NCBI GenBank assembly: GCA_965649825.1
Contig: OZ287715.1
Span: 121,766 to 185,765, forward strand
DNA: 64,000 bases
Direction: 5' to 3'
From: Penicillus capitatus
Taxonomy: Eukaryota > Plantae > Chlorophyta
Every line of letters starts with the position of its first letter. Within the stretch, counting starts at the first letter, position 1. Below are positions 1,350-64,000 of the stretch, one piece after another. The translations under genes were made by a program, and so were the position numbers. The notes under the pieces were generated by a model. That model was not told the DNA's origin, searched no databases, and saw only the letters and a program-made list of their open reading frames with translations.

Positions 1350-1652
1350 TGCAGGACGTGTTAGTAATGATGTGACATCATGGACTGCTGGTTACTTGAA
1401 CGTCGATGGCTCTCTAATGCGTTTGGATTCGTGCAGCGGTGTCGCTGATTTCGCATCTTCATTCTTTCAGAGCGAAATTCCAGAGAACTGGTGATTTGTC
1501 GTCGAGGGACTTCGGAGAACCTCGTTTCTACCAACGTTGCCCTAAGTGGTCGTCTAGGTACGCGTTTAACACTGCCTCCGTGTGTACGTTCGTTCGCCTA
1601 TGCGTTTCTTTCGCCGAATCCTGTGTTCTGAGACAGAAGTGGCTGTCATCAG

Positions 1653-4600: not shown

Positions 4601-5171
4601 AGACATGAGCTCACCCGAATTGACTGTTGCCATTCGGGGAGCACAGAAATTATGCCAGTGTGGTTCCTCGGACTCTCCAGTCAGTGTGCCAGATGCGACG
4701 ACCCTTCCTAATCTTGCACTGCTGGCTCAGTCAGGAATGGACATGGGAATGTCATCGACATCTCCGGCAGATGCAGCTTCTCTGTTGATGACCAGTGCCT
4801 CGACCAACGACTTCATGCCACCCGTTTGCCATGCCCTCAACCTCGGATTGCTTCATCTGCAGTCCTCAGCATCTCTGTCGGCGGTGGATTCTCTCAATTC
4901 GTTCTCTTCTCTCCAACAGATGCATCAACCCGTAGCAAATGTCGCAGCTGCATCGGCAGAAGATGATCAAGTGACAGCGAATCGTGTCGATGGCGTCGTG
5001 GTTGCACAAGGCGTAGCTGTACCTCCAAGAGTTGTGCAAGGATTAAGTCATGTGACCAGTGGATTCCCAAGCATTCTCCCACATTCGAACAGTTTGCTTG
5101 GATCCAATGCAACCTCCTCACGGATGAATTCCAATGCACTCCGAGTACGTCGTGTCTCTTGTGGCCATTGA
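1653..5171 (+). CDS. PPR-SMR-cyclin fusion protein (multi-exon)
   Basis: Tandem P-type PPR motifs (DVYTYTAMISMC, NVHTYTALMNVC, NVVTYNTLIDIYGK, SVITYSSLISACEK) are followed by an SMR-like VNLHALTAGVA...WL...IVTDKG and then a cyclin box (HRTVLVQQL...HDAVLLMDR...LLSVACLVLAMK). GT-AG introns include 2622-2680 and 3833-3887; the latter joins NANK|LPFKE in frame. The 3' end may extend via one more intron. Confidence 0.85.
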
Positions 5172-7178
5172 TGGATGACATAGGGAATGCGAATGTGTGT
5201 CTTGTTCTTTGTCTAGGTTGTGGCATCAGGCGGGGTTCCGGTAACGGATGTCCGTGAGAATTAATGCATGATCTGTGTTGCTTAACTTGGGTGATTGATT
5301 GATCTGTGGAGGTTCCGATCTGCTTTTTTCATCGTATAAGAGCATCACCTGCGTTTTGTTTTGGTTTGCTTGGTAAGTCGATCATCTGGTCACTTTCGTT
5401 GGTTTGTTTGTTTGTTGGTTGGTTGTGGTACTAGCATTCAGTTCTATTATATTGTGGGATGGGCCATCTACGTGTCTGCAATGTGTCATGGTGTCAATTT
5501 CGATGCCGACCGACACCTGAATTTTGGGATTCACGTTATTCTTGCCTTTATCCTGAGTCTATATTTTTTCCGATCCACTTGTCATGCTAAATGGTTCGAA
5601 TGTTACCGTCTCCATCTGCTTCACGAACATTCCTTGCCAATGCTCTGCGACACCTATTGGCCGGTAGAATGATCATCGAGCTGCGATCCAGTGCCTCTGA
5701 CAACAGCTGTTACCTCTGGACGTGCCGCTTGATGAGAGGGCACTGTAACACAAGTTTTGTTTGACGTCTAGAGGATACAGTTCTTGTTATCAAGCATGGG
5801 TCCACTAACGACAATGATGCTTCCATGACTGGCTGACTTTTCAACTGTCAACAATAACTGTCGTTGACAGTTAAAGAGGCGAGCATCAACAACAATCGAA
5901 GTATTATAAGAGATAAGAGATATTTTGAGCACACGAGAACGTTATAACTGGTGTTGATTTTCACAATAACATAATGCCAACTACAGCAGCAGCAGTCAGG
6001 AGTAAAGATCATGAGCATGGGATCTAGTTTGGGGTAGTAAGTACTCTTTTGATGAGCAGACGAGATCTGCACGACGTCTGGATTGTCTAACGAACGCTGA
6101 TGATGGATTGTTCTTTCAATGGAGACAATGGGATACGTTTGATGATTAAACGATGGACTGATATCGTCAATCATCGTCCAAAAAATCATGAGATTATGGA
6201 TGTTTGTTTTTGTCTGTTCATCGTTCACTTGGTCTTCACGATTGCTTAGCCGTTTGGCGATGACGACGACTCCTCCTCCCTGACAATTACATCCGCTTGA
6301 GCCCACAGAAGAAAGATATCCATTCTTACTAGTATTTGTTCGTTTGTTCGTTTGTTTGCTTCTGTCTTTGCTGTTTGTATGCAAAGGAAGTTATTCTTTA
6401 TCATCCGTCTGAGAATGCATGATCAGCAGTTATTTGTGATTCAGCAAATGTTCTGTGGCATTGGCTCTGACCAAACGTCCTTTCCGACATGCAAATGTTG
6501 TTGTGGTGCATCAGATTCCTCTGCATACAGATACAGACAATCTTGTGATGAGTGCGTGTTCATTACACAGGTGCACGATGTCTCTGTTGACAGCCCATCT
6601 CTCTCCTACGGAGTCTCAATCATGTCTTTTCTAAAATCAGACGATGACAACTATTACACACATGTAGGAGTTTTGTCCATGTTTTGCGCCGACCGAGACA
6701 GTCGATCGGTTGTATGCTGATTCCGAGGAGAACAAAGATGATCGTCAGAAAACAAAACAACATGTCTTCCTTCTTCTTCTTACATACGTCGTCATTGTTA
6801 TTAGTCGGGCGGACTCTGGTGGAAGGGTTGGATTGTTGTTTCTTATATCTCTGATAACATTTTCCAATCCCTAGCGGCTTTAGAATCTCATCAACGTTTG
6901 ATGATGAACCACGGCCTCACTGTGGCACATACGTGAGTTTTGGCTGGTCATTGGTGTGGTCTTCTGTAATTCTTGCTAGCGTTCTTGCCATCTGATCGTT
7001 CGTTCGATTCCATCCCATGATGACACTCTCTCCTCGAGCTTTTAAATAAGTATTGTTTTAATTGTTTTGATTTTTTGTGCACGACAGTGCAGATCTTGTT
7101 ACAGCTCGGTCGGTAGAACATTGTTTAAATCGAACGTCATTTGGTACAAGGACGAGAGACTCGAATGATCAACTTCAG

Positions 7179-43107: not shown

Positions 43108-44250
43108 TCATGATGAACATTCAGTCGGTAACGCAGTGTCCTGAATGCAGAAGAAGATACAGTTGAGAATCGCCATTTCTGTCTTTAAGGCATCCCTCTG
43201 CAGCGATGACGTCTCCTTCGTCGTTTGTTCACTGTGTTCGTGGACGATCGCATTACTGAACATGTTGATACAATCTTCAATGTAACTGCAGTTCTCCGAT
43301 GGTAATCTCATAATTCGAACAACTACCGAGAGTTAGTACTGTCAACATACGAATGGTTTAAAAGCAGAAATGAGTAGCTGGAAATCACAAACACTCGACT
43401 TGGGTGATGTATTGGCAAATCGCATTTAGTTCTGAATCAACTAGTGTACCAGATCAGAAGGCTCAGAAATGCTCATCTGTATTTACTGTTTTATCTCATA
43501 TATAGCGGCCATCGCTGCTTTCGTTCTACTCAGAATATTGAAAACTTCTGCAGATAGGGCAGTCCTTTTGTCTCATTGTAGCGAAATCGTGTTGAGCTTC
43601 CTTTTTATTGCGAAGAATGGACCAGTTCCCAAGGGTAAGGTAGAATGCTTCTTTCTTTTTTGGGAAGCGAGACCTGTGAAGTGTAGTACAAGCTGCTTCG
43701 CTTGACGTCAGCATGTTAAGTCCTTTGGCTGGCCATGTTGCCCACATTCAGCATAGACGACAACATTGACCTACACGTTGTTTGGTTTATTTGTCCAGAA
43801 GTCGACAGTTATCCCGAAGTGGTCCATCATTATCCTGAAGTCTGTGCGGATGTTAAGTGCAGTAGGGTTGACATTTGCTAAGAAACAGCGAATGACCAAA
43901 ATCAGATCCAGTTCGAGAGGTGAGCCCGCGTCAGCAAACCTGTTCCTAACATTTTTAGACAACAGAACTCATGGTGGTGACCAAGTCAACCTTGCCAATG
44001 CGCCAAGGTAAGCACACAACCAATGCGGCAGCATCAAAACCACCGAACTATGAAGGTTTGCTCTGAGGTGCGGCGTGCATAGTCTACTCAAAGAATAGTG
44101 ATTCGTAAGGAACACGAATCGGTCATCAGACGGCTTGAGAAACGCGCAAGAAGTTCCGAAGATGTGGCGACAATAGGTTTTTCTTCAATACACGACTTTC
44201 TCTGGCGTCAACCTTCGAATTCGTTTCCCAGTGCATCACGGAACATGTAC
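43108..44250 (-). CDS. Hypothetical multi-exon protein
   Basis: Protein-like spliced reading ...HWLCAYLGALA|RNRFADAGSPLELDLILVIRCFLAN... plus ORFs 43526-43747 and 43108-43311; family unresolved. Confidence 0.25.
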
Positions 44251-44375
44251 ATTAAGGTTGGATCATCGATCACGGCTTCCACGACGCTTAGACCTCGAAC
44301 ATAGAACGTTTGGTCTGACGTGTTCCTTTTGTCCTTTGAGTGACGGACACATTTGCGGAAGTCGAATTGAAACAC

Positions 44376-46400
44376 ATGGCATACGCGAACAGCCCCCTCA
44401 CCAAAGCTGTGTACCGTGGTATTCTGAAGGGGTAAGATCCGGAACCAGTTACACGCGCAGTACACGTTTACATTCTGTATGGTCGGCAATGTCACGTTAG
44501 GTCGAAGACTCTGGAGGAGAGTCCAGCCTTGAAGGTAAAGCGAGCTATTGAGGCCAGATCAACAGGTCTCTGTTCTTCGCGATAGGCGATTCTTCGAAAC
44601 GATGCTGAAGTCCTTCCTTACACGTTCAGGAGAATACTCAATGTTTACTTCGGAATGAAGGATTTCTACATTCCCGTGTCAGACAAGAAATATGACTTGG
44701 TCGACAGAGTAAAGCAAGGAGCAAGTCTGCTGGTAAGAACTCGATCCCATTCATCTCTATCTCTTAGAAACTTGATTTGTACATGAGCGTGACAGCACGT
44801 CCATTGGAGAGAGTCTGCACGTGCTGCGATTCATCAATGAAGCTCTCGAAAAGGGAAGAAAATATCGACTTTTGGGTATGATGACTCTAAAGGTGTCTTT
44901 CTTCCTTTCTGGAAAGTTTGTAGGAAGCAGAAAATCAAGTGCAGCATCGAATGTAATCAATCAGTCATATCTGCCACTTCGCGGATTCCTCTGAATCGCT
45001 CTTAGGGAAATGTGAAGCTGGTAACAGAGCCCTCGCGAGGCGTCGTCTTAATTGCTCATCCGATGCTGACCGGCTGGTTTAAACGATCTGTTGTCTTTAT
45101 GGTAATGCCCTGGACAATGAAAAAGGAAGAAACGCAACGGTCTGCATTTAGTTGTCACATACAGAAGAAGCCTCAGTCGGTCTTTGCATCAATAAGCCAT
45201 TAAGCGTCACGCTGAGAGACATACAGCTGATGGCCAAGAGGTCCAGATGTATATCTTTCCTTTGCGATGCCTATTGCTTTGTTATACAGTGCGTTGTCGA
45301 ACGCGAAGAAAGGGGAAAAAACAGTCAGTTTGCACATAGATAACTATGGAGATGTGAGATTCTCGGTAGAAGTGTGTGGTAGTGCTTTATACATTGTTCT
45401 TGAGAACAGTGTGTCAGGTGGCTACTTCGGGAGACGACTTGTTCATTCCAAGCAAACGGCTCGTATCTTTAGAGGCAACGGCCAGCTACAGACAAGCAAT
45501 GAAGGACGCACAAGACGAAGCCAGATCACTTCATGATTGTTTACTGAAAAAGAAACTGACTGGGGTGACATTGGAGGACGAAGAAAATGAGTCCCTGACT
45601 AGCGCAGAGAAGTTTTTGCAGCATCCGCTGACCATCAGTGACACAAAGGCCAGACTCTTTTGATTTCTGTTGCCGCACGAACCCAACTCTAGGTCGAGTA
45701 TCAACGTACAAAGGCGGAAGGCGAAGAAAGTGATGTTTGCTGGAGATCTTCAGACGACAAGACCGAAGAAGACATGAGTATGAATTCTCCGAGTTCTTCC
45801 GCGCGCACACAATCAGCGGAAAACGTGACTGCATGCATCTTCTACCTGTTAGAACTTATTCTGGAATTTAACGTTTGTTAGGGGAGTACTGACAAGACAT
45901 CCTTTCAGTCTGGTTCCCTCTTGGATACGCGAATTTCTAATGGAGGTCCTGTTCAAGCAATAGGGGCTTTGCACAATATTTCATCGCTATCGGGTGTAAC
46001 AGCTCTTGCAGGAGTCAAGTTTAGCGAAGAAAGGAATCTGCAAATATGGAGACATCAGCCAGGAAACCTACTCTCCGAGAAAGAAAGAATACGACTCTTT
46101 CTTGGAGAGTGTACATGGTCAGATGGGCAGTTGGCAGACGAAGTGAAGCAGGGGTGTTGGATTATGTGCAAAGCTACGAACCAGGAACTGGATTTACTTA
46201 ATGGTGCGTTCTTATTGGCTGCAAACTAGGTGGTCTGTTTAAGTGTTACCGCGTCTGAGGGTTGGTTTGTTGTGTTCCATCTAGGTGATGTACGATTAAC
46301 AAACTCGGATGGTTCGGTATGGAATTATCTCCTGAATGCTCTTGGAGAAGAGTATGCAGATCTTGCAAGGATACCTTACGAACTGCCTGAAGTCCTGTAG
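44376..46400 (+). CDS. YqgE/AlgH (UPF0301, DUF179) family protein with long N-terminal extension
   Basis: VLIAHPML..WFKRSVVF, HTEEASVGLCINKPL, NGGPV, RLFLGECTWSDGQLADEVKQGCW, VWNYLLNALGEEYADLARIP. Upstream exons MAYANSPLTKAVYRGILK|GSKTLEESPALK|AILRND... splice GT-AG in phase. Confidence 0.8.
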
Positions 46401-47031
46401 TAGCACCGACGTTTTTTTCTTCTTGAACAAGATCAGAGATCTTGTGCGAGGGAACACTCTTTGCCTGTCTCGTCATTCTGCCAGTTGTTCGAAGTCTTCT
46501 CAGTCGAAAACTACTGACCTCGCAACAGAACTCTGACAATTTGAGATGATGGGTAGAATTGTGGCTAAGGTCAATTTTCTGTTCGGACAACCGGTTTAAC
46601 AGAGGTTTGTCCTAAAGCTGCACGCAATGCTACAGGGAAGAACTGTAGACTACAGCAACGGTTTTCTGGACATCAGGATACCTACTGAAACGGAACTGGA
46701 ATTCATGCTTCTATCATGGCGAATCGGTTCAGTCATTATCATCATCCAGAATTCAGGTGCGGGCAGGTGCGAACATCGACCTCAATGATCTACTGCGAAG
46801 TCTTCACGAATTCTCAGCAGTCTTGAGACGACATTGAGGTGCTCACTGTAACGGATGGATGGATCTGCGATATATCGACCGTTGGCCATGAAATGGCGAT
46901 CGTGTTGGGATTGTTTGCATTAGTTGAGTGCAATGACTCAGATGCCATGTGTCGGAATGCGAACTCGGTCTTCGCCATTGTTTTCCGCCGTCTGAGAGAA
47001 TATCTCTGTCTTCGACATTGTTTTCCGCCGT

Positions 47032-48353
47032 TTGATAGAATATCGGTGTTGTGTCATTCGCACAACAGAGAAAGCTCTCACGTTGCCATTCAAGACTGCC
47101 TCACGCCTGGACCACGGGAGGCCCCCCCCCTGGACCACGGGAGGCCCCCCCCTGGACCACGGGAGGCCCCCCCTGGACCACGGGAGGCCCCCCCTGGACC
47201 ACGGGAGGCCCCCCCTGGACCACGGGAGGCCCCCCCTGGACCACGGGAGGCCCCCCCCCCTGGACCACGGGAGGCCCCCCCCCCTGGACCACGGGAGGCC
47301 CCCCCCCCTGGACCACGGGAGGCCCCCCCCCCTGGACCACGGGAGGCCCCCCCCCCTGGACCACGGGAGGCCCCCCCCCTGGACCACGGGAGGCCCCCCC
47401 CCCTGGACCACGGGAGGCCCCCCCCCCTGGACCACGGGAGGCCCCCCCTGGACCGTCCTTCATCATCAACGGTGTCGACAAATCAAGCACAGTGGGAAGA
47501 AATCAGGGAAAAGCTGATCAAGAACACAGAGATACATGAACTCCCTCCATCCGAAGCACAGAAGACCATACGTGAAATCACGCGCCTCAAGCGAAGAAAC
47601 CCGGACACTGAAGAGCTCGAGGACTCGTTCACGATACGCGTCCACGCCAACGAGACGACAACGGCAGCGTCCCTTTACCAGGGTCTCCGGGTCCGATACC
47701 CTGAAGAACAAGGTCCACCGCGTGATACGAAGAATCATGCAAGAGACAGACGAAATGTCATCCTGGACCGCGTTTGCGAACTTCTGGATCGGGGCGTTGA
47801 ACGCTGAAAACATTCTACCTGTGGAAAGCCAACCGAAGAAGTTGGAAGTCTTGAATGCAGTTCTCAAGATCAGTCGCGAGAGAAAGTCGGCGTGGCGTGT
47901 GAAGAGAATCGGCGAAAGACACGGTCAGTTCTTCATTAACGTCTGCTACTCGGTTGGCAACCCCTCAGACGCAGCACCAGGCGCAGGACCAGGATCAGAC
48001 TCAGGATCACATCTTAGCCGTTGACGCTCGAAGCCGTTTTCGAAGAAGCTTTTAGAGAATGTTTTTTTACACCAAAAAGTACAATCGTTAGGTCGGTGCT
48101 GGGAAAGCCGTCCTTGTCCACTTGTCTCCATAAGACGAGATCGTCGGCATACATCTGGCAGCACATTCTTCCTGTCGATAACCACGAGCGGAAGCTCGAG
48201 GTTTTGAATGCCGTCTGGAAGATCAGTCGCGAAAGCATATCGTTTTGGCATGTGAATCGCACCAAAGACCGCTACGGGATACTCTTCACGAACATTTGCT
48301 ATTTAGTTGGGCGCTCAGGCACAGGCACAGGCCCAGATCTGAGTCCTTGTTGA
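47032..48353 (+). pseudogene. Fragmented orphan ORF(s) carrying the VNTR and a twice-repeated ~50-aa domain
   Basis: ORFs 47536-48024 and 48021-48353 share ILPV...KLEVLNAV.KISRE....W.V.R.....G..F.N.CY.VG. The pieces lie in different frames. Confidence 0.4.
47106..47453 (+). repeat. VNTR of TGGACCACGGGAGG + C(7-10), 15 full units
   Basis: Counted C-run lengths 9,8,7,7,7,7,10,10,10,10,10,9,10,10,7, giving 21-24 nt units. Confidence 0.97.
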
Positions 48354-48520
48354 GGTTCGCGTGAAGCCGTCCGTGAAAGAGAGAAGCTTTAGTATTAATT
48401 TGCTCTACACCACTGAGTACCTGACGAGAATCGGTTGTCGTACCCGGCCGCGAGGTCGTCAAGCGCGCAGCGACACCGTCCTCACTCTAAGAATGCTGTC
48501 CGGGGACACTCCAGCAAGGT

Positions 48521-48915
48521 GTTGCATCGGCCAAGTCGTTTGGAGAACATGCGGAACCTTCCCGTGCACCCCCATGCGGACCCGTTCAGCGGTTCAGCGG
48601 CTCGTCACATCAGATTTCCAGCTCCGGGTCCGGCAACGAGTCGGCCGCCACCGAGCACGTGAACCAGCTCAGAACACTCCTACCAGCATCCCTGTTGCAT
48701 CGGCCAAGTCGTTTGGAGAACATGCGGAACCTTCCCGTGTACCCCCATGCGGACCCGTTCAGCGGTTCAGCGGGTCGTCACATCAGATTTCCACCAACCG
48801 GCCGGGCAACGAGTCGGCCGCCACCGAGCACGTGAACCAGCTCAGAACACTCCTACCAGCATCCCAGTTGCTTCGGCCAAGTCGTTTGGAGAACATGCAG
48901 GACCTCCCGGAGCGT
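48521..48915 (+). repeat. 173-bp tandem repeat (2 full copies + partial) at the satellite's proximal edge
   Basis: GTTGC(A/T)TCGGCCAAGTCGTTTGGAGAACATGC starts at 48521, 48694 and 48867. Confidence 0.92.
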
Positions 48916-51900
48916 TAATGTGCTCGAGCATTCTAGCGCACACCATCCGTCGGTCGCCGGAGGAACAAGGGTCCCCCCTTTGCTTCGCAACCGTAGCAAA
49001 TGTGTCAGCGCCGGAGGGAACAAGGGTCCCCCCTTTGCTTCGCAACCGTAGCAAATGTGTCAGCGCCGGAGGAACAAGGGTCCCCCCTTTGCTTCAATTG
49101 TTGCGACCCTCAACTACGGTTACAATTGTTGCGACCCTCAACTACGGTTATAAATGTTGCGACCTCAACTACGGTTATAAATGTTGCGACCCGCCGGAGG
49201 GAACAAGGGTCCCCCCTTTGCTTCGCATCCTCGCACCACCCGTCGGTCGCCGGAGGGTACAAGGGTCCCCCCTTTGCTTCAATTGTTACGATCCTCAACT
49301 ACGGTTATAAATGTTGCGACCCTCAACTACGGTTATAATTGTTGCGACCCGCCGGAGGGTACTAGGGTCCCCCCTTTGCTTCGCATCCTCGCACCACCCG
49401 TCGGTCGCCGGAGGAACAAGGGTCCCCCCTTTGCTTCAATTGTTACGATCCTCAACTACGGTTATAAATGTTGCGACCCTCAACTACGGTTATAAATGTT
49501 GCGACCCGCCGGAGGGAACAAGGGTCCCCCCTTTGCTTCGCATCCTCGCACCACCCGTCGGTCGCCGGAGGAACAAGGGTCCCCCCTTGCTTCGCAACCG
49601 TAGCAAATGTGTCGTCATCCCAACCGTAGCAAATGTGTCATCCCAACCGTAGCAGATGTGTCGGTCGCCGAGGTAACAAGGGTCCCCCCTTTGCTTCAAT
49701 TGTTACGACCCGACGCAGGGTACAAGGGTCCCCCCTTTGCTTCAATTGTTACGACCCGACGCAGGGTACAAGGGTCCCCCCTTTGCTTCAATTGTTACGA
49801 CCCGCAGCCGCCGGCGACTTGAGGACCTCGATGGATGCAAACCTGCACGTGGATGCACATGGTGAACTTCTAGGAACATCCCAGTTGCTTCGGCCAAGTC
49901 GTTTGGAGAACATGCGGACCCTCCCGGAGCGCAAACGTGCTCGAGCATTCCAGCGCACACCATCCGTCGGTCGCCGGAGGAACAAGGGTCCCCCCTTGCT
50001 TCGCAACCGTAGCAAATGTGTCATCCCAACCGTAGCAAATGTGTCATCCCAACCGTAGCAAATGTGTCATCCCAACCGTAGCAAATGTGTCATCCCAACC
50101 GTAGCAAATGTGTCATCCCAACCGTAGCAGATGTGTCGGTCGCCGAGGTAACAAGGGTCCCCCCTTTGCTTCAATTGTTACGACCCGCAGCCGCCGGCGA
50201 CTTGAGGACCTCGATGGATGCAAACCTGCACGTGGATGCACATGGTGAACTTCTAGGAACATCCCAGTTGCTTCGGCCAAGTCGCTTGGAGAACATGCGG
50301 ACCCTCCCGGAGCGCTAACGTGCTCGAGCATTCTAGCGCACACCATCCGTCGGTCGCCGGAGGAACAAGGGTCCCCCCTTGCTTCGCAACCGTAGCAAAT
50401 GTGTCATCCCAACCGTAGCAAATGTGTCATCCCAACCGTAGCAGATGTGTCGGTCGCCGAGGTAACAAGGGTCCCCCCTTTGCTTCAATTGTCACGACCC
50501 GACGCAGGGTACAAGGGTCCCCCCTTTGCTTCAATTGTTACGACCCGCAGCCGCCGGCAACTTGAGGACCTCGATGGATGCAAACCTGCACGTGGATGCA
50601 CATGGTGAACTTCTAGGAACATCCCAGTTGCTTCGGCCAAGTCGCTTGGAGAACATGCGGACCCTCCCGGAGCGCTAACGTGCTCGAGCATTCTAGCGCA
50701 CACCATCCGTCGGTCGCCGGAGGAACAAGGGTCCCCCCTTTGCTTCGCAACCGTAGCAAATGTGTCAGCGCCGGAGGGAACAAGGGTCCCCCCTTTGCTT
50801 CGCAACCGTAGCAAATGTGTCAGCGCCGGAGGAACAAGGGTCCCCCCTTTGCTTCAATTGTTGCGACCCTCAACTACGGTTACAATTGTTGCGACCCTCA
50901 ACTACGGTTATAAATGTTGCGACCTCAACTACGGTTATAAATGTTGCGACCCGCCGGAGGGAACAAGGGTCCCCCCTTTGCTTCGCATCCTCGCACCACC
51001 CGTCGGTCGCCGGAGGGTACAAGGGTCCCCCCTTTGCTTCAATTGTTACGATCCTCAACTACGGTTATAAATGTTGCGACCCTCAACTACGGTTATAAAT
51101 GTTGCGACCCGCCGGAGGGTACTAGGGTCCCCCCTTTGCTTCGCATCCTCGCACCACCCGTCGGTCGCCGGAGGAACAAGGGTCCCCCCTTTGCTTCAAT
51201 TGTTACGATCCTCAACTACGGTTATAAATGTTGCGACCCTCAACTACGGTTATAAATGTTGCGACCCGCCGGAGGGAACAAGGGTCCCCCCTTTGCTTCG
51301 CATCCTCGCACCACCCGTCGGTCGCCGGAGGGTACAAGGGTCCCCCCTTTGCTTCAATTGTTACGATCCTCAACTACGGTTATAAATGTTGCGACCCTCA
51401 ACTACGGTTATAAATGTTGCGACCCGCCGGAGGGAACAAGGGTCCCCCCTTTGCTTCGCATCCTCGCACCACCCGTCGGTCGCCGGAGGGTACAAGGGTC
51501 CCCCCTTTGCTTCAATTGTTACGATCCTCAACTACGGTTATAAATGTTGCGACCCTCAACTACGGTTATAAATGTTGCGACCCGCCGGAGGGTACTAGGG
51601 TCCCCCCTTTGCTTCGCATCCTCGCACCACCCGTCGGTCGCCGGAGGAACAAGGGTCCCCCCTTTGCTTCAATTGTTACGATCCTCAACTACGGTTATAA
51701 ATGTTGCGACCCTCAACTACGGTTATAAATGTTGCGACCCGCCGGAGGGAACAAGGGTCCCCCCTTTGCTTCGCATCCTCGCACCACCCGTCGGTCGCCG
51801 GAGGAACAAGGGTCCCCCCTTGCTTCGCAACCGTAGCAAATGTGTCGTCATCCCAACCGTAGCAAATGTGTCATCCCAACCGTAGCAGATGTGTCATCCC

Positions 51901-54900
51901 AACCGTAGCAGATGTGTCGGTCGCCGAGGTAACAAGGGTCCCCCCTTTGCTTCAATTGTTACGACCCGACGCAGGGTACAAGGGTCCCCCCTTTGCTTCA
52001 ATTGTTACGACCCGACGCAGGGTACAAGGGTCCCCCCTTGCTTCGCAACCGTAGCAAATGTGTCATCCCAACCGTAGCAAATGTGTCATCCCAACCGTAG
52101 CAAATGTGTCATCCCAACCGTAGCAGATGTGTCGGTCGCCGAGGTAACAAGGGTCCCCCCTTTGCTTCAATTGTTACGACCCGACGCAGGGTACAAGGGT
52201 CCCCCCTTTGCTTCAATTGTTACGACCCGACGCAGGGTACAAGGGTCCCCCCTTTGCTTCAACTGTTACGACCCGCAGCCGCCGGCGACTTGAGGACCTC
52301 GATGGATGCAAACCTGCACGTGGATGCACATGGTGAACTTCTAGGAACATCCCAGTTGCTTCGGCCAAGTCGTTTGGAGAACATGCGGACCCTCCCGGAG
52401 CGCAAACGTGCTCGAGCATTCCAGCGCACACCATCCGTCGGTCGCCGAGGTAACAAGGGTCCCCCCTTTGCTTCAATTGTTACGACCCGACGCAGGGTAC
52501 AAGGGTCCCCCCTTTGCTTCAACTGTTACGACCCGCAGCCGCCGGCGACTTGAGGACCTCGATGGATGCAAACCTGCACGTGGATGCACATGGTGAACTT
52601 CTAGGAACATCCCAGTTGCTTCGGCCAAGTCGCTTGGAGAATATGCGGACCCTCCCGGAGCGCTAACGTGCTCGAGCATTCTAGCACACACCATCCGTCG
52701 GTCGCCGGAGGAACAAGGGTCCCCCCTTTGCTTCAATTGTTACGACCCGACGCAGGGTACAAGGGTCCCCCCTTTGCTTCAATTGTTACGACCTGCAGCC
52801 GCCGGCGACTTGAGGACCTCGATGGATGCAAACCTGCACGTGGATGCACATGGTGAACTTCTAGGAACATCCCAGTTGCTTCGGCCAAGTCGCTTGGAGA
52901 ACATGCGGACCCTCCCGGAGCGCTAACGTGCTCGAGCATTCTAGCGCACACCATCCGTCGGTCGCCGGAGGAACAAGGGTCCCCCTTGCTTCGCAACCGT
53001 AGCAAATGTGTCATCCCAACCGTAGCAGATGTGTCATCCCAACCGTAGCATATGTGTCGGTCGCCGAGGTAACAAGGGTCCCCCTTTGCTTCAATTGTTA
53101 CGACCCGACGCAGGGTACAAGGGTCCCCCCTTTGCTTCAATTGTTACGACCCGACGCAGGGTACAAGGGTCCCCCCTTTGCTTCAATTGTTACGACCCGC
53201 AGCCGCCGGCGACTTGAGGACCTCGATGGATGCAAACCTGCACGTGGATGCACATGGTGAACTTCTAGGAACATCCCAGTTGCTTCGGCCAAGTCGTTTG
53301 GAGAACATGCGGACCCTCCCGGAGCGCAAACGTGCTCGAGCATTCCAGCGCACACCATCCGTCGGTCGCCGGAGGAACAAGGGTCCCCCCTTGCTTCGCA
53401 ACCGTAGCAAATGTGTCATCGCAACCGTAGCAAATGTGTCATCCCAACCGTAGCAGATGTGTCATCCCAACCGTAGCAAATGTGTCATCCCAACCGTAGC
53501 AGATGTGTCGGTCGCCGAGGTAACAAGGGTCCCCCCTTTGCTTCAATTGTTACGACCCGACGCAGGGTACAAGGGTCCCCCCTTTGCTTCAACTGTTACG
53601 ACCCGCAGCCGCCGGCGACTTGAGGACCTCGATGGATGCAAACCTGCACGTGGATGCACATGGTGAACTTCTAGGAACATCCCAGTTGCTTCGGCCAAGT
53701 CGTTTGGAGAACATGCGGACCCTCCCGGAGCGCAAACGTGCTCGAGCATTCCAGCGCACACCATCCGTCGGTCGCCGAGGTAACAAGGGTCCCCCCTTTG
53801 CTTCAATTGTTACGACCCGACGCAGGGTACAAGGGTCCCCCCTTTGCTTCAACTGTTACGACCCGCAGCCGCCGGCGACTTGAGGACCTCGATGGATGCA
53901 AACCTGCACGTGGATGCACATGGTGAACTTCTAGGAACATCCCAGTTGCTTCGGCCAAGTCGCTTGGAGAATATGCGGACCCTCCCGGAGCGCTAACGTG
54001 CTCGAGCATTCTAGCACACACCATCCGTCGGTCGCCGGAGGAACAAGGGTCCCCCCTTTGCTTCAATTGTTACGACCCGACGCAGGGTACAAGGGTCCCC
54101 CCTTTGCTTCAATTGTTACGACCTGCAGCCGCCGGCGACTTGAGGACCTCGATGGATGCAAACCTGCACGTGGATGCACATGGTGAACTTCTAGGAACAT
54201 CCCAGTTGCTTCGGCCAAGTCGCTTGGAGAACATGCGGACCCTCCCGGAGCGCAAACGTGCTCGAGCATTCCAGCGCACACCATCCGTCGGTCGCCGGAG
54301 GAACAAGGGTCCCCCCTTGCTTCAATTGTTACGATCCTCAACTACGGTTATAAATGTTGCGACCCTCAACTACGGTTATAAATGTTGCGACCCGCCGGAG
54401 GGAACAAGGGTCCCCCCTTTGCTTCGCATCCTCGCACCACCCGTCGGTCGCCGGAGGGTACAAGGGTCCCCCCTTTGCTTCAATTGTTACGATCCTCAAC
54501 TACGGTTATAAATGTTGCGACCCGCCGGAGGGAACAAGGGTCCCCCCTTTGCTTCGCATCCTCGCACCACCCGTCGGTCGCCGGAGGGTACAAGGGTCCC
54601 CCCTTTGCTTCAATTGTTACGATCCTCAACTACGGTTATAAATGTTGCGACCCTCAACTACGGTTATAAATGTTGCGACCCGCCGGAGGGAACAAGGGTC
54701 CCCCCTTTGCTTCGCATCCTCGCAGCACACCCGTCGGTCGCCGGAGGGTACAAGGGTCCCCCCTTTGCTTCAATTGTTACGATCCTCAACTACGGTTATA
54801 AATGTTGCGACCCTCAACTACGGTTATAAATGTTGCGACCCGCCGGAGGGTACTAGGGTCCCCCCTTTGCTTCGCATCCCTCGCACCACCCGTCGGTCGC

Positions 54901-57900
54901 CGGAGGAACAAGGGTCCCCCCTTTGCTTCAATTGTTACGATCCTCAACTACGGTTATAAATGTTGCGACCCTCAACTACGGTTATAAATGTTGCGACCCG
55001 CCGGAGGGAACAAGGGTCCCCCCTTTGCTTCGCATCCTCGCACCACCCGTCGGTCGCCGGAGGAACAAGGGTCCCCCCTTGCTTCGCAACCGTAGCAAAT
55101 GTGTCGTCATCCCAACCGTAGCAAATGTGTCATCCCAACCGTAGCAGATGTGTCATCCCAACCGTAGCAGATGTGTCGGTCGCCGAGGTAACAAGGGTCC
55201 CCCCTTTGCTTCAATTGTTACGACCCGACGCAGGGTACAAGGGTCCCCCCTTTGCTTCAATTGTTACGACCCGACGCAGGGTACAAGGGTCCCCCTTGCT
55301 TCGCAACCGTAGCAAATGTGTCATCCCAACCGTAGCAAATGTGTCATCCCAACCGTAGCAAATGTGTCATCCCAACCGTAGCAGATGTGTCGTCGCCGAG
55401 GTAACAAGGGTCCCCCCTTTGCTTCAATTGTTACGACCCGACGCAGGGTACAAGGGTCCCCCCTTTGCTTCAATTGTTACGACCCGACGCAGGGTACAAG
55501 GGTCCCCCCTTTGCTTCAACTGTTACGACCCGCAGCCGCCGGCGACTTGAGGACCTCGATGGATGCAAACCTGCACGTGGATGCACATGGTGAACTTCTA
55601 GGAACATCCCAGTTGCTTCGGCAAGTCGTTTGGAGAACATGCGGACCCTCCGGAGCGCAAACGTGCTCGAGCATTCCAGCGCACACCATCCGTCGGTCGC
55701 CGAGGTAACAAGGGTCCCCCCTTTGCTTCAATTGTTACGACCCGACGCAGGGTACAAGGGTCCCCCCTTTGCTTCAACTGTTACGACCCGCAGCCGCCGG
55801 CGACTTGAGGACCTCGATGGATGCAAACCTGCACGTGGATGCACATGGTGAACTTCTAGGAACATCCCAGTTGCTTCGGCCAAGTCGCTTGGAGAATATG
55901 CGGACCCTCCCGGAGCGCTAACGTGCTCGAGCATTCTAGCACACACCATCCGTCGGTCGCCGGAGGAACAAGGGTCCCCCCTTTGCTTCAATTGTTACGA
56001 CCTGCAGCCGCCGGCGACTTGAGGACCTCGATGGATGCAAACCTGCACGTGGATGCACATGGTGAACTTCTAGGAACATCCCAGTTGCTTCGGCCAAGTC
56101 GCTTGGAGAACATGCGGACCCTCCCGGAGCGCTAACGTGCTCGAGCATTCTAGCGCACACCATCCGTCGGTCGCCGGAGGAACAAGGGTCCCCCCTTGCT
56201 TCGCAACCGTAGCAAATGTGTCATCCCAACCGTAGCAGATGTGTCATCCCAACCGTAGCATATGTGTCGGTCGCCGAGGTAACAAGGGTCCCCCTTTGCT
56301 TCAATTGTTACGACCCGACGCAGGGTACAAGGGGTCCCCCCTTTGCTTCAATTGTTACGACCCGACGCAGGGTACAAGGGTCCCCCCTTTGCTTCAATTG
56401 TTACGACCCGCAGCCGCCGGCGACTTGAGGACCTCGATGGATGCAAACCTGCACGTGGATGCACATGGTGAACTTCTAGGAACATCCCAGTTGCTTCGGC
56501 CAAGTCGTTTGGAGAACATGCGGACCCTCCCGGAGCGCAAACGTGCTCGAGCATTCCAGCGCACACCATCCGTCGGTCGCCGGAGGAACAAGGGTCCCCC
56601 CTTGCTTCGCAACCGTAGCAAATGTGTCATCGCAACCGTAGCAAATGTGTCATCCCAACCGTAGCAAATGTGTCATCCCAACCGTAGCAGATGTGTCATC
56701 CCAACCGTAGCAGATGTGTCATCCCAACCGTAGCAGATGTGTCATCCCAACCGTAGCAGATGTGTCGGTCGCCGAGGTAACAAGGGTCCCCCCTTTGCTT
56801 CAATTGTTACGACCCGACGCAGGGTACAAGGGTCCCCCCTTTGCTTCAACTGTTACGACCCGCAGCCGCCGGCGACTTGAGGACCTCGATGGATGCAAAC
56901 CTGCACGTGGATGCACATGGTGAACTTCTAGGAACATCCCAGTTGCTTCGGCCAAGTCGTTTGGAGAACATGCGGACCCTCCCGGAGCGCAAACGTGCTC
57001 GAGCATTCCAGCGCACACCATCCGTCGGTCGCCGGAGGAACAAGGGTCCCCCCTTGCTTCGCAACCGTAGCAAATGTGTCATCGCAACCGTAGCAAATGT
57101 GTCATCCCAACCGTAGCAGATGTGTCATCCCAACCGTAGCAAATGTGTCATCCCAACCGTAGCAGATGTGTCGGTCGCCGAGGTAACAAGGGTCCCCCCT
57201 TTGCTTCAATTGTTACGACCCGACGCAGGGTACAAGGGTCCCCCCTTTGCTTCAACTGTTACGACCCGCAGCCGCCGGCGACTTGAGGACCTCGATGGAT
57301 GCAAACCTGCACGTGGATGCACATGGTGAACTTCTAGGAACATCCCAGTTGCTTCGGCCAAGTCGTTTGGAGAACATGCGGACCCTCCCGGAGCGCAAAC
57401 GTGCTCGAGCATTCCAGCGCACACCATCCGTCGGTCGCCGGAGGAACAAGGGTCCCCCCTTGCTTCAATTGTTACGATCCTCAACTACGGTTATAAATGT
57501 TGCGACCCTCAACTACGGTTATAAATGTTGCGACCCGCCGGAGGGAACAAGGGTCCCCCCTTTGCTTCGCATCCTCGCACCACCCGTCGGTCGCCGGAGG
57601 GTACAAGGGTCCCCCCTTTGCTTCAATTGTTACGATCCTCAACTACGGTTATAAATGTGCGACCCTCAACTACGGTTATAATTGTTGCGACCCGCCGGAG
57701 GGTACTAGGGTCCCCCCTTTGCTTCGCATCCTCGCACCACCCGTCGGTCGCCGGAGGAACAAGGGTCCCCCCTTTGCTTCAATTGTTACGATCCTCAACT
57801 ACGGTTATAAATGTTGCGACCCTCAACTACGGTTATAAATGTTGCGACCCGCCGGAGGGAACAAGGGTCCCCCCTTTGCTTCGCATCCTCGCACCACCCG

Positions 57901-60237
57901 TCGGTCGCCGGAGGGTACAAGGGTCCCCCCTTTGCTTCAATTGTTACGATCCTCAACTACGGTTATAAATGTTGCGACCCTCAACTACGGTTATAAATGT
58001 TGCGACCCGCCGGAGGGTACTAGGGTCCCCCCTTTGCTTCGCATCCTCGCACCACCCGTCGGTCGCCGGAGGAACAAGGGTCCCCCCTTTGCTTCAATTG
58101 TTACGATCCTCAACTACGGTTATAAAATGTTGCGACCCTCAACTACGGTTATAAATGTTGCGACCCGCCGGAGGGAACAAGGGTCCCCCTTTGCTTCGCA
58201 TCCTCGCACCACCCGTCGGTCGCCGGAGGAACAAGGGTCCCCCCTTGCTTCGCAACCGTAGCAAATGTGTCGTCATCCCAACCGTAGCAAATGTGTCATC
58301 CCAACCGTAGCAGATGTGTCATCCCAACCGTAGCAGATGTGTCGGTCGCCGAGGTAACAAGGGTCCCCCCTTTGCTTCAATTGTTACGACCCGACGCAGG
58401 GTACAAGGGTCCCCCCTTTGCTTCAATTGTTACGACCCGACGCAGGGTACAAGGGTCCCCCCTTGCTTCGCAACCGTAGCAAATGTGTCATCCCAACCGT
58501 AGCAAATGTGTCATCCCAACCGTAGCAAATGTGTCATCCCAACCGTAGCAGATGTGTCGGTCGCCGAGGTAACAAGGGTCCCCCCCTTTGCTTCAATTGT
58601 TACGACCCGACGCAGGGTACAAGGGTCCCCCCTTTGCTTCAATTGTTACGACCCGACGCAGGGTACAAGGGTCCCCCCTTTGCTTCAACTGTTACGACCC
58701 GCAGCCGCCGGCGACTTGAGGACCTCGATGGATGCAAACCTGCACGTGGATGCACATGGTGAACTTCTAGGAACATCCAGTTGCTTCGGCCAAGTCGTTT
58801 GGAGAACATGCGGACCCTCCCGGAGCGCAAACGTGCTCGAGCATTCCAGCGCACACCATCCGTCGGTCGCCGAGGTAACAAGGGTCCCCCTTTGCTTCAA
58901 TTGTTACGACCCGACGCAGGGTACAAGGGTCCCCCCTTTGCTTCAACTGTTACGACCCGCAGCCGCCGGCGACTTGAGGACCTCGATGGATGCAAACCTG
59001 CACGTGGATGCACATGGTGAACTTCTAGGAACATCCCAGTTGCTTCGGCCAAGTCGCTTGGAGAATATGCGGACCCTCCCGGAGCGCTAACGTGCTCGAG
59101 CATTCTAGCACACACCATCCGTCGGTCGCCGGAGGAACAAGGGTCCCCCCTTTGCTTCAATTGTTACGACCCGACGCAGGGTACAAGGGTCCCCCCTTTG
59201 CTTCAATTGTTACGACCTGCAGCCGCCGGCGACTTGAGGACCTCGATGGATGCAAACCTGCACGTGGATGCACATGGTGAACTTCTAGGAACATCCCAGT
59301 TGCTTCGGCCAAGTCGCTTGGAGAACATGCGGACCCTCCCGGAGCGCTAACGTGCTCGAGCATTCTAGCGCACACCATCCGTCGGTCGCCGGAGGAACAA
59401 GGGTCCCCCCTTGCTTCGCAACCGTAGCAAATGTGTCATCCCAACCGTAGCAGATGTGTCATCCCAACCGTAGCATATGTGTCGGTCGCCGAGGTAACAA
59501 GGGTCCCCCTTTGCTTCAATTGTTACGACCCGACGCAGGGTACAAGGGTCCCCCCTTTGCTTCAATTGTTACGACCCGACGCAGGGTACAAGGGTCCCCC
59601 TTTGCTTCAATTGTTACGACCCGCAGCCGCCGGCGACTTGAGGACCTCGATGGATGCAAACCTGCACGTGGATGCACATGGTGAACTTCTAGGAACATCC
59701 CAGTTGCTTCGGCCAAGTCGTTTGGAGAACATGCGGACCCTCCCGGAGCGCAAACGTGCTCGAGCATTCCAGCGCACACCATCCGTCGGTCGCCGGAGGA
59801 ACAAGGGTCCCCCCTTGCTTCGCAACCGTAGCAAATGTGTCATCGCAACCGTAGCAAATGTGTCATCCCAACCGTAGCAAATGTGTCATCCCAACCGTAG
59901 CAGATGTGTCATCCCAACCGTAGCAGATGTGTCATCCCAACCGTAGCAGATGTGTCGGTCGCCGAGGTAACAAGGGTCCCCCCTTTGCTTCAATTGTTAC
60001 GACCCGACGCAGGGTACAAGGGTCCCCCCTTTGCTTCAACTGTTACGACCCGCAGCCGCCGGCGACTTGAGGACCTCGATGGATGCAAACCTGCACGTGG
60101 ATGCACATGGTGAACTTCTAGGAACATCCCAGTTGCTTCGGCCAAGTCGTTTGGAGAACATGCGGACCCTCCCGGAGCGCAAACGTGCTCGAGCATTCCA
60201 GCGCACACCATCCGTCGGTCGCCGGAGGAACAAGGGT
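48867..60237 (+). repeat. Complex modular satellite with a 20-bp core (AAGGGTCCCCCCTTTGCTTC), internal 23- and 28-bp subrepeats, and a ~3.2 kb higher-order repeat
   Basis: Modules of 46, 56, 102 and 214 bp plus a variable (23-mer)n module, each beginning with the core. Identical variant sites recur at ~3210-bp spacing. Confidence 0.97.
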
Positions 60238-63200
60238 AGTTTGATAATAAATAGTTGATTGACCTTCTCCTGCATTGTCAGATATAACCACGTCATAAGA
60301 GGTAATATCACACTCTGGTCCAGTTACATAATGGTTTTCAAAACAATAAGTCAATTCAACCAATCCTTCTCCAACGTATTCCACATTTTGATAAATCATA
60401 CACCAAAAATCTTCTTGGCAATCCATAAACCGGACCTTGAAAGTGGCAGGGCATTCTTCACCAGTTTCTTCGTCACAAAGAATGATAGTACCTGTCAATC
60501 CTTCATTTGCTACATAATAGTCCCAATCGGTAATATGTAGGAATGCGTTCAATTTAATTCATTCCACCAGGAAATATTGATGTAGGCATGGTTTAGAATG
60601 TTTAAGTATCCGCCATAATCAATGGTAGGGAAGTTACCACAGAATATATAGCCATCCGGGATCATCATTGTTACGGAATACCAATTGAAATAATCAAAAG
60701 GGTTCATATCGGCCATATTCAAACTAATAATCACTTCATCTACCGTGTTACCACCTAATACACAGCCAAAAGAATGAACTGTAAAGCTGGTTTCTAATTC
60801 TTCCGGACAATTGCTGCTGCAAATAAGTACTTCCAGACAGAATTCGTCAGAACTTACCTGACATCCTCCGTCATTGATGTGAAGGGTAATTTTGCCTGCC
60901 ATGGCAGTAGTCAGTGTTAAAGGGGTAATACTTCCAGAACCAGTGTTTAGGATGGAAATACTTCCACTTTCATCTTCCAATTGCCATTCCCAAGAGCTAA
61001 AAGACCCTGGTATCCCATTTAAAATGATATTGTTTTTATCAAGCGTTGTATCACAATATTCATAACATCCACTTAAAAAGGAAGTGAAATCAATGGCGTT
61101 ATCCACAATAGTGGTGGTATTAGATGAACAGCCATTTTCATCGGTGTAGGTAACCGAATAAAAACCATTTTGGCCCGGATAGATGCATTGATCCGTAAAG
61201 TTGACGATATTGGTACCCGACCAAACTACCTCTGTATATGGTGAAGCACAAAGTTCAATGGAATAAGGTTCACAATTAATCGGACCTTCAATGATCTCTG
61301 GGGGAGCAGGATTCCCAAATACGGTTATGGTCGTACTTAATTCAGCACACTCCGTACCTCCGGTACCTAAGGCAATTACCCGGATATCATAAGTGCCAGG
61401 TGAAAAAATACTTAAATCCGGGCCGTTTTCAATGTAACTGGCTGGAATAGGGTTGATTTCCCAATCATAGGTATAACCTTGGGCCGGAGTTACTGATAAA
61501 AAGGCTCCGGAACAGCCATCAATAGCTCCCATAATCCCGGTGGCAAAAGGATCAAATAATTGAAGAGGTAGCGGTTCAGGAACAAAATTACATCCATTAA
61601 CATCTGTGATAGTGACAAAATAAACATCGCTAACCATTACATACGGATTTGGAAGTGTTTCCTGTCCTGTTGGAACAGGACTCCATGAATAAGAAACAAT
61701 AGCTGGACTACCGGGATCTGGATCAAAGGATAATTCCGCCGAAGCACTGCAATCCATATAATCAAAAGAAATTTCTCCATCCATGGTATTTACGGCTATA
61801 TCATATTCTGACTAGATTGGACCGTACATCCGTAAATGGATTCAACCTGTAAATTTTACCTGGTAAGCGTTGGCAGTATTATAAGTTTTGAAAGGTTCGT
61901 AAAGCTGGCTAAACGAACCATCTCCAAAATCCCATAATACGTTCAAAACAAGCTCTTCCTGTAGGTTAGGAGTAAATTGGATGGCTTGTCCTTCACAAGT
62001 CCCAGTTTGAGAGAAACTAAATTCGGCGGAAGGAGAAGCAGGTACTATGATATCATGGCACTGTGCGCATTTGTATGGCTGAAACCCAGTTGAACCTATT
62101 CTTAGACAAGCAGAAATAGTACTTCCGGGAGAAACCCCCGCAATATTGATGGAAGATCCTGTTCCACCTTGTTGATTTCCTCCATCAATTTGATAAACCC
62201 ATTCTTGTTCAACCTGTGTAGGATCCTCGAAATAATTGGATATATCATTGAGCGTGACATCATATTTATCCGGATCAGCGCTACAATCAAAATTCCATTC
62301 GAAATCCGTAATAAAGGGAATTACCACCTGCTCAAAATCACTATCTTCGCAAAGCAATTCAATAGGTTGACCCGTTTCGGGATCTTTCACAACTTCTGTA
62401 CTAATATTTACTATACAAAGGGAATTGGGATCGTAGCTACAGAAGTCCTCAAATTCAAGGATCTGTCCAGAGCACGTTTCAATAAAAACTTGAATATCCA
62501 ACTGAGTTTCAAAGGCAGAGAGCCAAACCCCGTAAACACCGGGTAAGTCTCCTAATACCAGATTGTTTTGGATGAGTTCTCCCTGATTTGAAATAGGTAT
62601 GCTAGAAAAAGTATTGTCCGGCCTTCTTATTAGCCAACGAGGAGCGTAGGCGTCATCAAAATCTGTTATGGTTCCGGAAATATCAATTGCTGCACAAGGG
62701 TCTTGCTGTGAGGCAAAAGACCATTGATCGATGGTTATGGTAATATCATTATCCGGGGGAAGGGAGTCGCAGCAAGGAGTTTCACAATTGTAAAATACTG
62801 GCTCATCATCTGTGTTGGAACAAACACCATTATCCACGATTACGCTATAGTTCCCTGTTTCTGTTATGGTCACAGGTGGGGGACAATCCAGGCAAAACAC
62901 TACACCATCTTTATACCAATCATATGTATAACTAGGATTGAAAGGGATTACATTTAATTGGGAGGTAAAAGGAGTTCCTTCGGGGCAAGGGAGGAAATCC
63001 AAAAAGATAATTTCAGGTTCCGGATTGGCAATAATATCGATAAAATACACTGCTGCCGGCACACCAAAACATCCATTTGGCCGAATGGCCTTTAGAATTA
63101 CCTGATGTTGCCCCGGCGTTTCGAAAATGTAATCTAAAGTGGGGGCATTCCCTCCGGGACAGGCATTCCGTCGACTTCCCACATATAACTATCTGCGGTT

Positions 63201-64000
63201 GTTGCATTGGAGGAAAAAGTAACCGTCTCTCCCTGGCAAGCCTGAGGAGGGCCCACTATTTCTAATTCAAAGGGGGTTAAGGTGACCACTAATTGGTTGG
63301 AGACATTTTGATTACAAACAGACGAAGAAACACTTATAGTAACATCCATTGGGGTTGGATGGTAAAGCCACTGAATTTCCACCTCATCGGTGTTTTGTCC
63401 TGTAACGATACTTCCAAGTGCCGGATCGATCGACCATTGGTAATTAAATCCTCCTGAAACAGATGCAGTATAGGATTCGTAACTGTCGGGACATGGTGTT
63501 TGATTCCCTATAATTTCAATCTCCGGAGTCGTAATTGCCGTAACCATATAGACCGCCGTATCGGAATTACAACTGGCACCTTGATACATGGTTTCGCGCC
63601 AAACCCATATTTCATTATCCGGAGAATCTACGGTCCAGTTATAACTGGTAAAATTTCCCGATTTTTCAGTTGGGATTCCATCTTCCCAAAAAACCCAATG
63701 GATAATATCGAAAGGAACATTATCAAAAACAAAGTAAGTGTACGTTTGATTTAAACACACTTCCGTCGGACCATTAAAGTTCATGATCTCCGGACTTTCC
63801 AACACTTCAATGGCAAAGGTGGAAGGACAAATCGTGCTACCTCCAATAGTAACTTGTACTTCCAAGCTGTAAATGCCTGGTTCGTCAAATAGGTCGCCAG
63901 ATAAATCTACATCTGGCCCCTCTTGGTCTGAGTCGAATAGTATTTCGGCCCCTTGATAAAGCGTCCACCTTATAGTCCCATTTGGAATCGGGCTAAGGGC
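60238..64000 (-). CDS. Bacterial (Bacteroidota-type) large PKD/PKD-like repeat surface protein, broken by indels, truncated at the satellite junction and open at the window end
   Basis: Intronless, AT-richer DNA. Pieces 63134-64000, 61842-63182, 60549-61784 and 60238-60552 read as one protein with EIIGNQTPC...YQWSI...GSIVTGQNTDEVEIQW (PKD-like), VLWDFGDGSFS..EPFKTY (PKD) and YSVTYTDENGCS repeats. Confidence 0.85.

Follow-up and report, generated by a model that had tools for sequence, protein, structure and literature searches.

How does a tandem array come to be built from units of different length and low mutual similarity that are all headed by the same 20-bp box and succeed one another in an apparently rule-bound order? 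The question is raised by a satellite of the green alga Penicillus capitatus, lying in a 64,000-nucleotide stretch of contig OZ287715.1 that was analysed as a whole and is called the window below. We put at about three in four the probability that this satellite is a lineage-specific, non-coding, multi-locus conserved-box family, whose units would have arisen from one composite monomer by deletion, slippage and unequal exchange and would then have been multiplied by higher-order copying. An earlier note on this DNA had described five different modules, all hinged on one hairpin core.

The satellite comprises about 11.7 kb of non-coding DNA, and its core-bearing part (48967-60237) consists of densely packed tandem units on one strand. 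The core box is the 20-mer AAGGGTCCCCCCTTTGCTTC, of which the array holds 79 exact copies; with up to two mismatches there are 86 matches, against none in 100 shuffles, and slack in homopolymer length raises the number of complete cores to 111, every one of them on the + strand, from 48967 to 60037. A search with the same slack found no core on the - strand or in the rest of the window. Cores in the window that are not exact differ either in homopolymer length or by one A-to-T substitution at position 1: 16 have TT for TTT, six start with TAGGG, and the others differ in the length of the C-run or G-run. The earlier note had estimated about 100 copies, each followed by one of several payloads. 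The exact figure is 111 complete cores and one truncated core, and cutting the array at the cores recovered five payload classes. Tandem Repeats Finder (TRF) reports periods of 23, 28, 46, 55, 158, 214, 260, 315, 406 and 452 bp; the 158-bp unit, previously singled out as nucleosome-sized, is only one of these ten or so periodicities and has no special standing among them.

A coding repeat protein was considered and rejected: the open reading frames (ORFs) of the array region are open in several frames and have no Pfam match, and one array ORF, when translated, found homologues only in other arrays. Rfam at its gathering threshold gave no match, ribosomal RNA included, in the window or at the three further loci described below, and in E-value mode it returned a single chance microRNA match over 46400-54400. 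An origin from a tRNA or a short interspersed element was also discarded, the window containing no tRNA, and a scan of the array for bacterial promoters and terminators gave 0 and 0, using a model that is uninformative for a eukaryote.

The payload classes are readily told apart. Class A (16 units) consists of three to seven copies of a 23-mer, and four further units, termed a0, carry a single copy; class B (32 units) has a 26-bp payload, or 46 bp with the core; class C (21 units) has one of 194 bp, or 214 bp with the core; class D (19 units) holds one to three copies of a 28-mer, 16 of its units being of the 102-bp form; and class E (19 units) has a payload of 35-38 bp, or ~56 bp with the core. 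A single array therefore contains monomers of 46, ~56, 74-129, 100-192 and 214 bp, which differ in length and show low similarity to each other. Ahead of the next core the payloads end in GGAGGAAC, GAGGGAAC, GAGGGTAC, GAGGTAAC or CAGGGTAC. E follows directly after D in 19 cases out of 19, and B stands directly before C in 19 out of 21, which bears out the two pairings that the earlier note had proposed.

Above these pairings lies a level of order that the earlier note did not contain. Aligned with itself, the array shows segments of 1.1-2.8 kb that recur 3143-3256 or 6428 bp further on at 97.6-99.3% identity, and this defines a higher-order unit of ~3.2 kb present in ~3.5 copies. Copies of this block are far more alike than the units inside it, which differ in both length and sequence. 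Because the ~3.2-kb superunit has been copied ~3.5 times, it accounts for most of the apparent 'grammar', and the array records few independent junction events. The idea that the order of modules follows rules is thus correct as far as the pairings go, but the rules themselves are mostly copies of one superunit.

Nor are the five classes independent modules, as had been supposed; alignments instead point to a nested set, derived from one long monomer by deletion and expansion. Class C aligns with a 406-bp module from another locus (L008, below) in two blocks, of 94% and 92.5% identity, that overlap on an internal direct repeat, so that C corresponds to the L008 module minus one subrepeat of 165-173 bp. 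The segment ahead of the first core (48361-48966) represents the same long module with 2.3 subrepeats of 173 bp and is 88% identical to the L008 module. Since this segment is long-module sequence, the satellite truly starts at ~48520; the span of 48967-60237 given in the earlier note does contain the cores, but it misses this beginning, and its right-hand limit is artificial. Class E matches the last ~39 nt of C at 32 of 36 positions. Joining the head of C to its tail gives a B-like unit, from which B of the window differs at two of 26 positions; D1 is one 28-mer plus this B-like unit (23/26), and D2 has one 28-mer more. The a0 payload is E-like (26/35 against E), and A is a0 with additional 23-mers. 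One long monomer, made up of box, head, subrepeats and tail, would therefore be able to account for all five classes through deletion and micro-expansion.

Linked variants locate the points at which unlike units meet. A TT-core stands before all 16 A payloads, whichever unit precedes them (B, C or E), and the remaining TT-cores occur only at 54305 and 57448, in the D units that open the third and fourth higher-order blocks; the crossover that duplicated the superunit would thus have fallen between the T-run and the payload. TAGGG cores occur only behind a D tail, GGGTAC (six of six). The A-type tail GAGGTAAC is also found on four C units, and B comes next after every one of them, as it does after 15 of the 16 A units. 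The left part of the box consequently moves with the preceding payload and its right part with the following one, with breakpoints spread across tail and box, so that the tail takes part in the transitions and not the box alone. Tail plus box (~30-40 bp) is the sole homology common to all units, which is why junctions of unlike units fall there. Switching at shared homology is what ordinary homology-dependent unequal exchange leads one to expect, and this mechanism may suffice to explain the junctions. The earlier proposal of shuffling at the core holds to the extent that modules do change at a conserved block, with variants placing the exchange inside it, but the tail is also involved and no special hinge is needed.

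On our reading, the ancestral monomer would have consisted of the box, a head AATTGTTACGACCC, an interior of at least one 165-173-bp subrepeat and a tail ending in ...GTCGGTCGCCGGAGG(G)(A/T)AC. Internal deletions would have produced the short units, with B representing head plus tail, E the box plus the last ~37 bp, and C the long module minus one subrepeat. Slippage-type micro-expansions would have given rise to D, whose 28-mer is built from the head, and to A, whose 23-mer derives from an E-like payload. Unequal crossing-over or gene conversion would subsequently have generated the 158/316-bp, 260-bp and 406-452-bp repeats and finally the ~3.2-kb unit in its ~3.5 copies; as such exchange requires homology, junctions between unlike units would come to lie in tail plus box.

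The same locus is available in a second, near-identical form, the public contig ctg340228_45x_l of ENA ERZ25074695 (308,862 bp), whose first 13.8 kb, reversed, align with window positions 43916-57720 at 99.6%. All 53 differing columns lie in a 24-bp minisatellite to the left of the array or in the satellite after 53973, and the unique DNA is identical. The order of units is the same for all 86 that overlap, which excludes a single accident of assembly as the origin of the mosaic, and the linked-variant pattern (TT-core, TAGGG and the A-type tail on C) is identical in the public record. That contig ends inside the array, and a search with exact array ORFs for the far side of the array returned only ctg340228 again. 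The window is a different sequence version from the ENA contig, the two being comparable in this respect over 53973-57720. Several singletons in the window after ~54 kb (for example at 54725, 54878, 55290, 55391, 55621, 55649, 56331 and 57657) interrupt an otherwise regular unit structure and are probably errors.

At the right-hand end of the array, between 60237 and 60238, a box is cut after AAGGGT and the GC content drops from 57% to 42%. An ORF (60118-60552) runs straight through this junction, and the flank beyond it shows frame breaks at ~63134-63182, 61784-61842 and 60549-60552. The best relative of the PKD-repeat flank is a Saprospiraceae metagenome-assembled genome at 30% identity, found in a second genome scan; an NCBIfam search and a first genome scan gave no match. 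The public contig is without this bacterial join. Judged from these sequence features, the join is likely to be non-biological, either a chimera or a concatenation of contigs, and an artificial join here means that the array is truncated. In practical terms, a foreign bacterial join is flagged at 60237/60238, and assemblies of this organism break at this satellite family.

Translating an array ORF and searching a protein collection revealed the family on three further contigs of ERZ25074695 (L008, L009 and L010). Their payloads measure 53, 124, 36, 386 and 630 bp, in addition to runs of a 27-mer. The family is therefore multi-locus, with at least four loci, and on our reading it is lineage-specific. 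The 20-mer gave five single matches in JGI metagenomes, of which the three inspected (L002-L004) were rejected as unrelated in context, two representing a single repeat of another kind and the third a perfect hairpin without relation to the satellite, and it was not found in IMG/VR. The hairpin in L004 (1615-1644) has a perfect 11-bp stem, GAAGCAAAGGG-TCC-CCCTTTGCTTC, and sits on a GC-rich contig. Another ERZ25074695 contig, L016 (ctg336954_24x_l), copies window positions 43473-48361 in its positions 449-4980 at 95% identity, without any box. Its coverage of 24x is about half that of the 45x array contig, and it may represent either another haplotype or a segmental duplication. After the point at which the similarity breaks off it goes on for 56 kb with ordinary genes, including pyruvate kinase at ~11.5 kb.

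Comparison between loci shows the box to be the most conserved element of the family. It is exact in 26 of 26 units at L008, 27 of 27 at L009, nine of 12 at L010 (where one core has a G-to-A change) and 79 of 111 in the window, with flanks that vary. Identity between loci is 98-100% for box plus head and 80-94% for the interiors, and in long modules the conserved stretch reaches past the box into the head. The near-absence of box substitutions across loci suggests either constraint, possibly exerted by a bound factor, or biased conversion. The description of the core as a hairpin was overstated. Its AAGGG/CCCTT inverted repeat has a stem of only 5 bp (-3.3 kcal/mol; z=-2.6 for the 20-mer alone), and in the context of a 46-nt unit folding is no better than in shuffled sequences (z=+0.9 and +0.7 for the two strands), with z at about -1 for two-unit and A-context folds. 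These context folds speak against a stable hairpin.

Table 1. Features in and around the array (window coordinates unless a contig is named) and further loci carrying the satellite family.
Feature	Position	Strand	Basis or remark
24-bp C-rich minisatellite, CCTGGACCACGGGAGG + 7-9 C	47106..47448	+	~1 kb before array
~160 bp of unique DNA between end of L016 homology and first satellite sequence	48361..48519	.	alignments to L016 and long module
Leading partial long module: 2.3 copies of 173-bp subrepeat + C-type tail ending ...GTCGGTCGCCGGAGGAAC	48520..48966	+	TRF; 88% identity to 406-bp L008 module
Mosaic array, 111 units (20-bp box + payload A/B/C/D/E)	48967..60231	+	core counts, cutting at cores, public-record unit order
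Higher-order block 1: a0 a0 D3 E D2 E D2 E A3 B B C A6 C A3 B C	48967..50726	+	unit string
Higher-order block 2: a0 a0 D3 E (D2 E)x5 A4 B B A4 B B C B C B C A3 B B C A5 B C B C B C	50727..54304	+	unit string, self-alignment
Higher-order block 3, opens with recombinant unit (TT-type core + D payload)	54305..57447	+	offsets 3143-3256 bp, 97.6-99.3% identity
Higher-order block 4, opens with TT-core + D recombinant unit as in block 3	57448..60231	+	98.3% identical to 50994-53790
Truncated 112th core, AAGGGT	60232..60237	+	artificial array end
Foreign flank: PKD-repeat ORFs with frame breaks, Bacteroidota-like, cut mid-ORF at junction	60238..64000	-	
L008			635-kb contig, 42x; array at contig start
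L009			48-kb contig, 48x; array at contig end
L010 = ctg175826_5x_l	1012-3130 of contig		6-kb contig, 5x; 2-kb array, unique DNA both sides

Between the genes and the array several smaller features precede the satellite. The minisatellite has 15 copies in the window, as against 16 in the public record and five in L016, and it is preceded by a direct duplication of 40 bp (46964-47044); its position resembles that of the G-rich microsatellite proximal to subtelomeric arrays in Chlamydomonas. A small ORF (...LEVLNAV.KISRE...), for which Pfam gave no match, is tandemly duplicated ahead of the array (47790-48024 and 48150-48353) and single in L016 (4703-4972).

Several points weigh against the derivation that we favour. 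The array is cut at 60237, and the window sequence past ~54 kb contains probable errors. The linkage evidence comes from few independent events, each multiplied by higher-order copying, and the direction of derivation, from long units to short ones and not the reverse, would follow from parsimony and is undated. Homology-driven exchange also leaves unexplained why the box is nearly free of substitutions when interiors are as low as 80% identical, for which constraint or conversion bias would be needed in addition.

Two further proposals concern the location and function of the arrays and are compatible with the derivation from one composite monomer. According to the first, the arrays are subtelomeric, like the Sultan and Subrin elements of green algae, and lie between the last genes and the telomere, with an orientation set relative to the chromosome end; we hold this tentatively, as a possibility somewhat short of an even chance. 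Three of the four arrays (window/ctg340228, L008 and L009), each independent of the others, begin next to unique DNA and are cut off by a contig end, and the cores of all three point towards that end. This constancy mildly favours a subtelomeric position, the signal being weak because three out of three in one orientation has P=0.25 by chance. The 46 kb to the left of the array are eukaryotic, with exons for cyclin, GYF, PPR, SUN, WD40, Ras and ribophorin, ~48% GC and short ORFs (the nearest named SUN homologue is a EukProt entry from Caulerpa lentillifera, at 44% identity). Genes reach to ~2.5 kb from the array, and the succession of genes, G/C-rich minisatellite, ~0.9-kb spacer and array is a layout like that of Chlamydomonas (PMC8287924). 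In a related species, whose SUN protein is 88% identical (ERZ26696514 ctg303589, L011, and ctg303836, L015) and which shares synteny across L22, ribophorin, SUN, Ras and GYF, the contigs end on the array side at 38.3 kb (4.08-Mb contig) and 33.4 kb (0.46-Mb contig) beyond SUN, the figure for the public contig here being 34.5 kb; a search of this species with the last conserved exon did not find the syntenic array region. On the other hand, none of 22 types of telomere-type repeat, at three or more copies, occurs in the window or in L007-L016, where the far sides are cut by contig ends. The proximal flanks of the three arrays have no common spacer, unlike the algal cases, and share only a 550-bp inverted match between L008 and L009 at 74.5%. 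Furthermore, the L010 array is interstitial, albeit on a 5x contig of uncertain origin, and the array-less copy in L016 continues with genes instead of ending.

The second proposal takes the box to be a functional protein-binding site and centromere determinant, comparable to the 19-bp box of Meloidogyne or the CENP-B box, in which case the arrays would be centromeric and selection would act on binding. We consider this rather unlikely. In its favour, two other loci have an unaltered box in all of their 53 units although interiors are just 80-94% identical, the GC content of the box exceeds that of the genome, a short dyad lies within it, and the assembly is broken by arrays at several contigs; CenH3-associated repeats of M. 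incognita with a conserved 19-bp dyad box (PMC8097292) offer a close formal parallel. The dyad is weak, however, in both its free energy and its context folds, and conservation in the long modules is not confined to the box. A 95% copy of the proximal flank that lacks the array, together with a 2-kb interstitial array, would be odd for an essential centromere, and breaks inside internal arrays should yield contig ends of both orientations where only one is seen, weak as that argument is at three ends. A more specific version, in which the 20-bp box is recognised by a dedicated DNA-binding or nicking protein that marks the arrays as centromeres or chromosome-end chromatin and also promotes the shuffling of units, strikes us as distinctly unlikely.

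It is improbable, in our view, that the satellite stems from tandem repeats inside a long terminal repeat (LTR) retrotransposon that were amplified later. The array in L010 lies ~0.5 kb upstream of a long ORF (742 aa, 3928-6153) ending in a CCHC zinc knuckle, CANCNARNHATEEC, which hints at a possible retroelement link; the break in L016 (5062-5760), where the array would begin, contains reverse-transcriptase (YFDDILV) and integrase-C-like fragments; and such an origin has been described for many plant satellites (PMC7004042). Against this, the L010 ORF has no Pfam match and no LTRs were identified, the sequences flanking the arrays at four loci are unrelated, and the retroelement fragments of L016 have nothing in common with the satellite.

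It seems very improbable that misassembly of a simpler repeat created the mosaic. The array does end in a chimeric join, singleton errors do cluster after ~54 kb, and the two versions of the locus do differ within repeats; yet the public record preserves the same order over 86 units, three more loci have the same design with other payloads, and the TT-core and similar variants recur consistently in both versions. Lastly, an identity as the intergenic spacer of ribosomal DNA (rDNA), which the array resembles only formally in having several GC-rich sub-repeat families in one orientation, is largely refuted and scarcely credible, given the lack of any ribosomal RNA or other Rfam family in the window and at L008-L010, the protein-coding genes directly upstream, and the occurrence of the family at four or more loci.

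The derivation from a single composite monomer can also be set against known repeat systems. Sub-repeat families of rDNA intergenic spacers, such as the 60/81-bp repeats of Xenopus, have a common motif and one orientation; unlike these, the present family has no adjacent rRNA genes and is found at multiple loci. Primate alpha-satellite offers a likeness at the level of organisation, in that diverged monomers make up a higher-order unit of several kb, with ~98-99% identity between its copies, and a short box, the CENP-B box, recurs in the monomers. Its monomers have a uniform length of 171 bp, in contrast to the range of 46 to 214 bp here, and the box of the present satellite is found in every unit.

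By analogy of layout, the closest match is with the subtelomeric arrays of green algae (Sultan, Subrin, Subrecs and Subrel; PMC8287924). As in those arrays, copies are directly oriented at several contig or chromosome ends, copies within an array are more alike than copies from different arrays, and units occur as indel variants; the proximal G/C-rich short repeat and spacer are further features in common with Chlamydomonas. Many of the algal arrays are likewise situated on telomere-less contigs in consistent orientation (PMC8287924). The differences are that no telomere repeats were seen here, that loci do not share a spacer, that one array is interstitial, and that the units vary far more than a single element of 350-850 bp does.

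The closest precedent is provided by the conserved-box satellites of Meloidogyne nematodes. In M. chitwoodi and M. fallax, divergent satellites keep the 17-20-bp Box 1/Box 2, which in higher-order repeats mark the precise points where one monomer type gives way to another (PMC3694981), and in M. incognita the CenH3-associated repeats are mosaics of 45-83 bp with a completely conserved 19-bp dyad box (PMC8097292). Here as there, monomers of different length and low similarity all possess one conserved GC-rich box of ~17-20 bp that holds a short dyad, transitions between unlike monomers take place at the box, simple and higher-order arrays coexist, and several monomer families are combined into mosaics. 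The sequences themselves are unrelated and come from a different organism, the dyad is weaker here (-3.3 as against -5.4 kcal/mol), and the M. incognita repeats are CenH3-associated; nested derivation from one long monomer can be demonstrated here. If the box were functional, an independent lineage would join the few cases in which a short invariant motif, and not the monomer, is the conserved element of a satellite, with relevance to how centromeric and chromosome-end repeats stay recognisable despite fast evolution. Should a dedicated box-binding protein exist, this would be a second independent example, outside nematodes, of a conserved box defining a functional satellite. As it stands, the array is a clean worked example of modules arising from one monomer by deletion and micro-expansion, and of higher-order copying creating apparent 'rules'. 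The conserved-box principle is already known from nematodes; what is new here is its occurrence in a new lineage, accompanied by unusually clear evidence of how the modules are derived.

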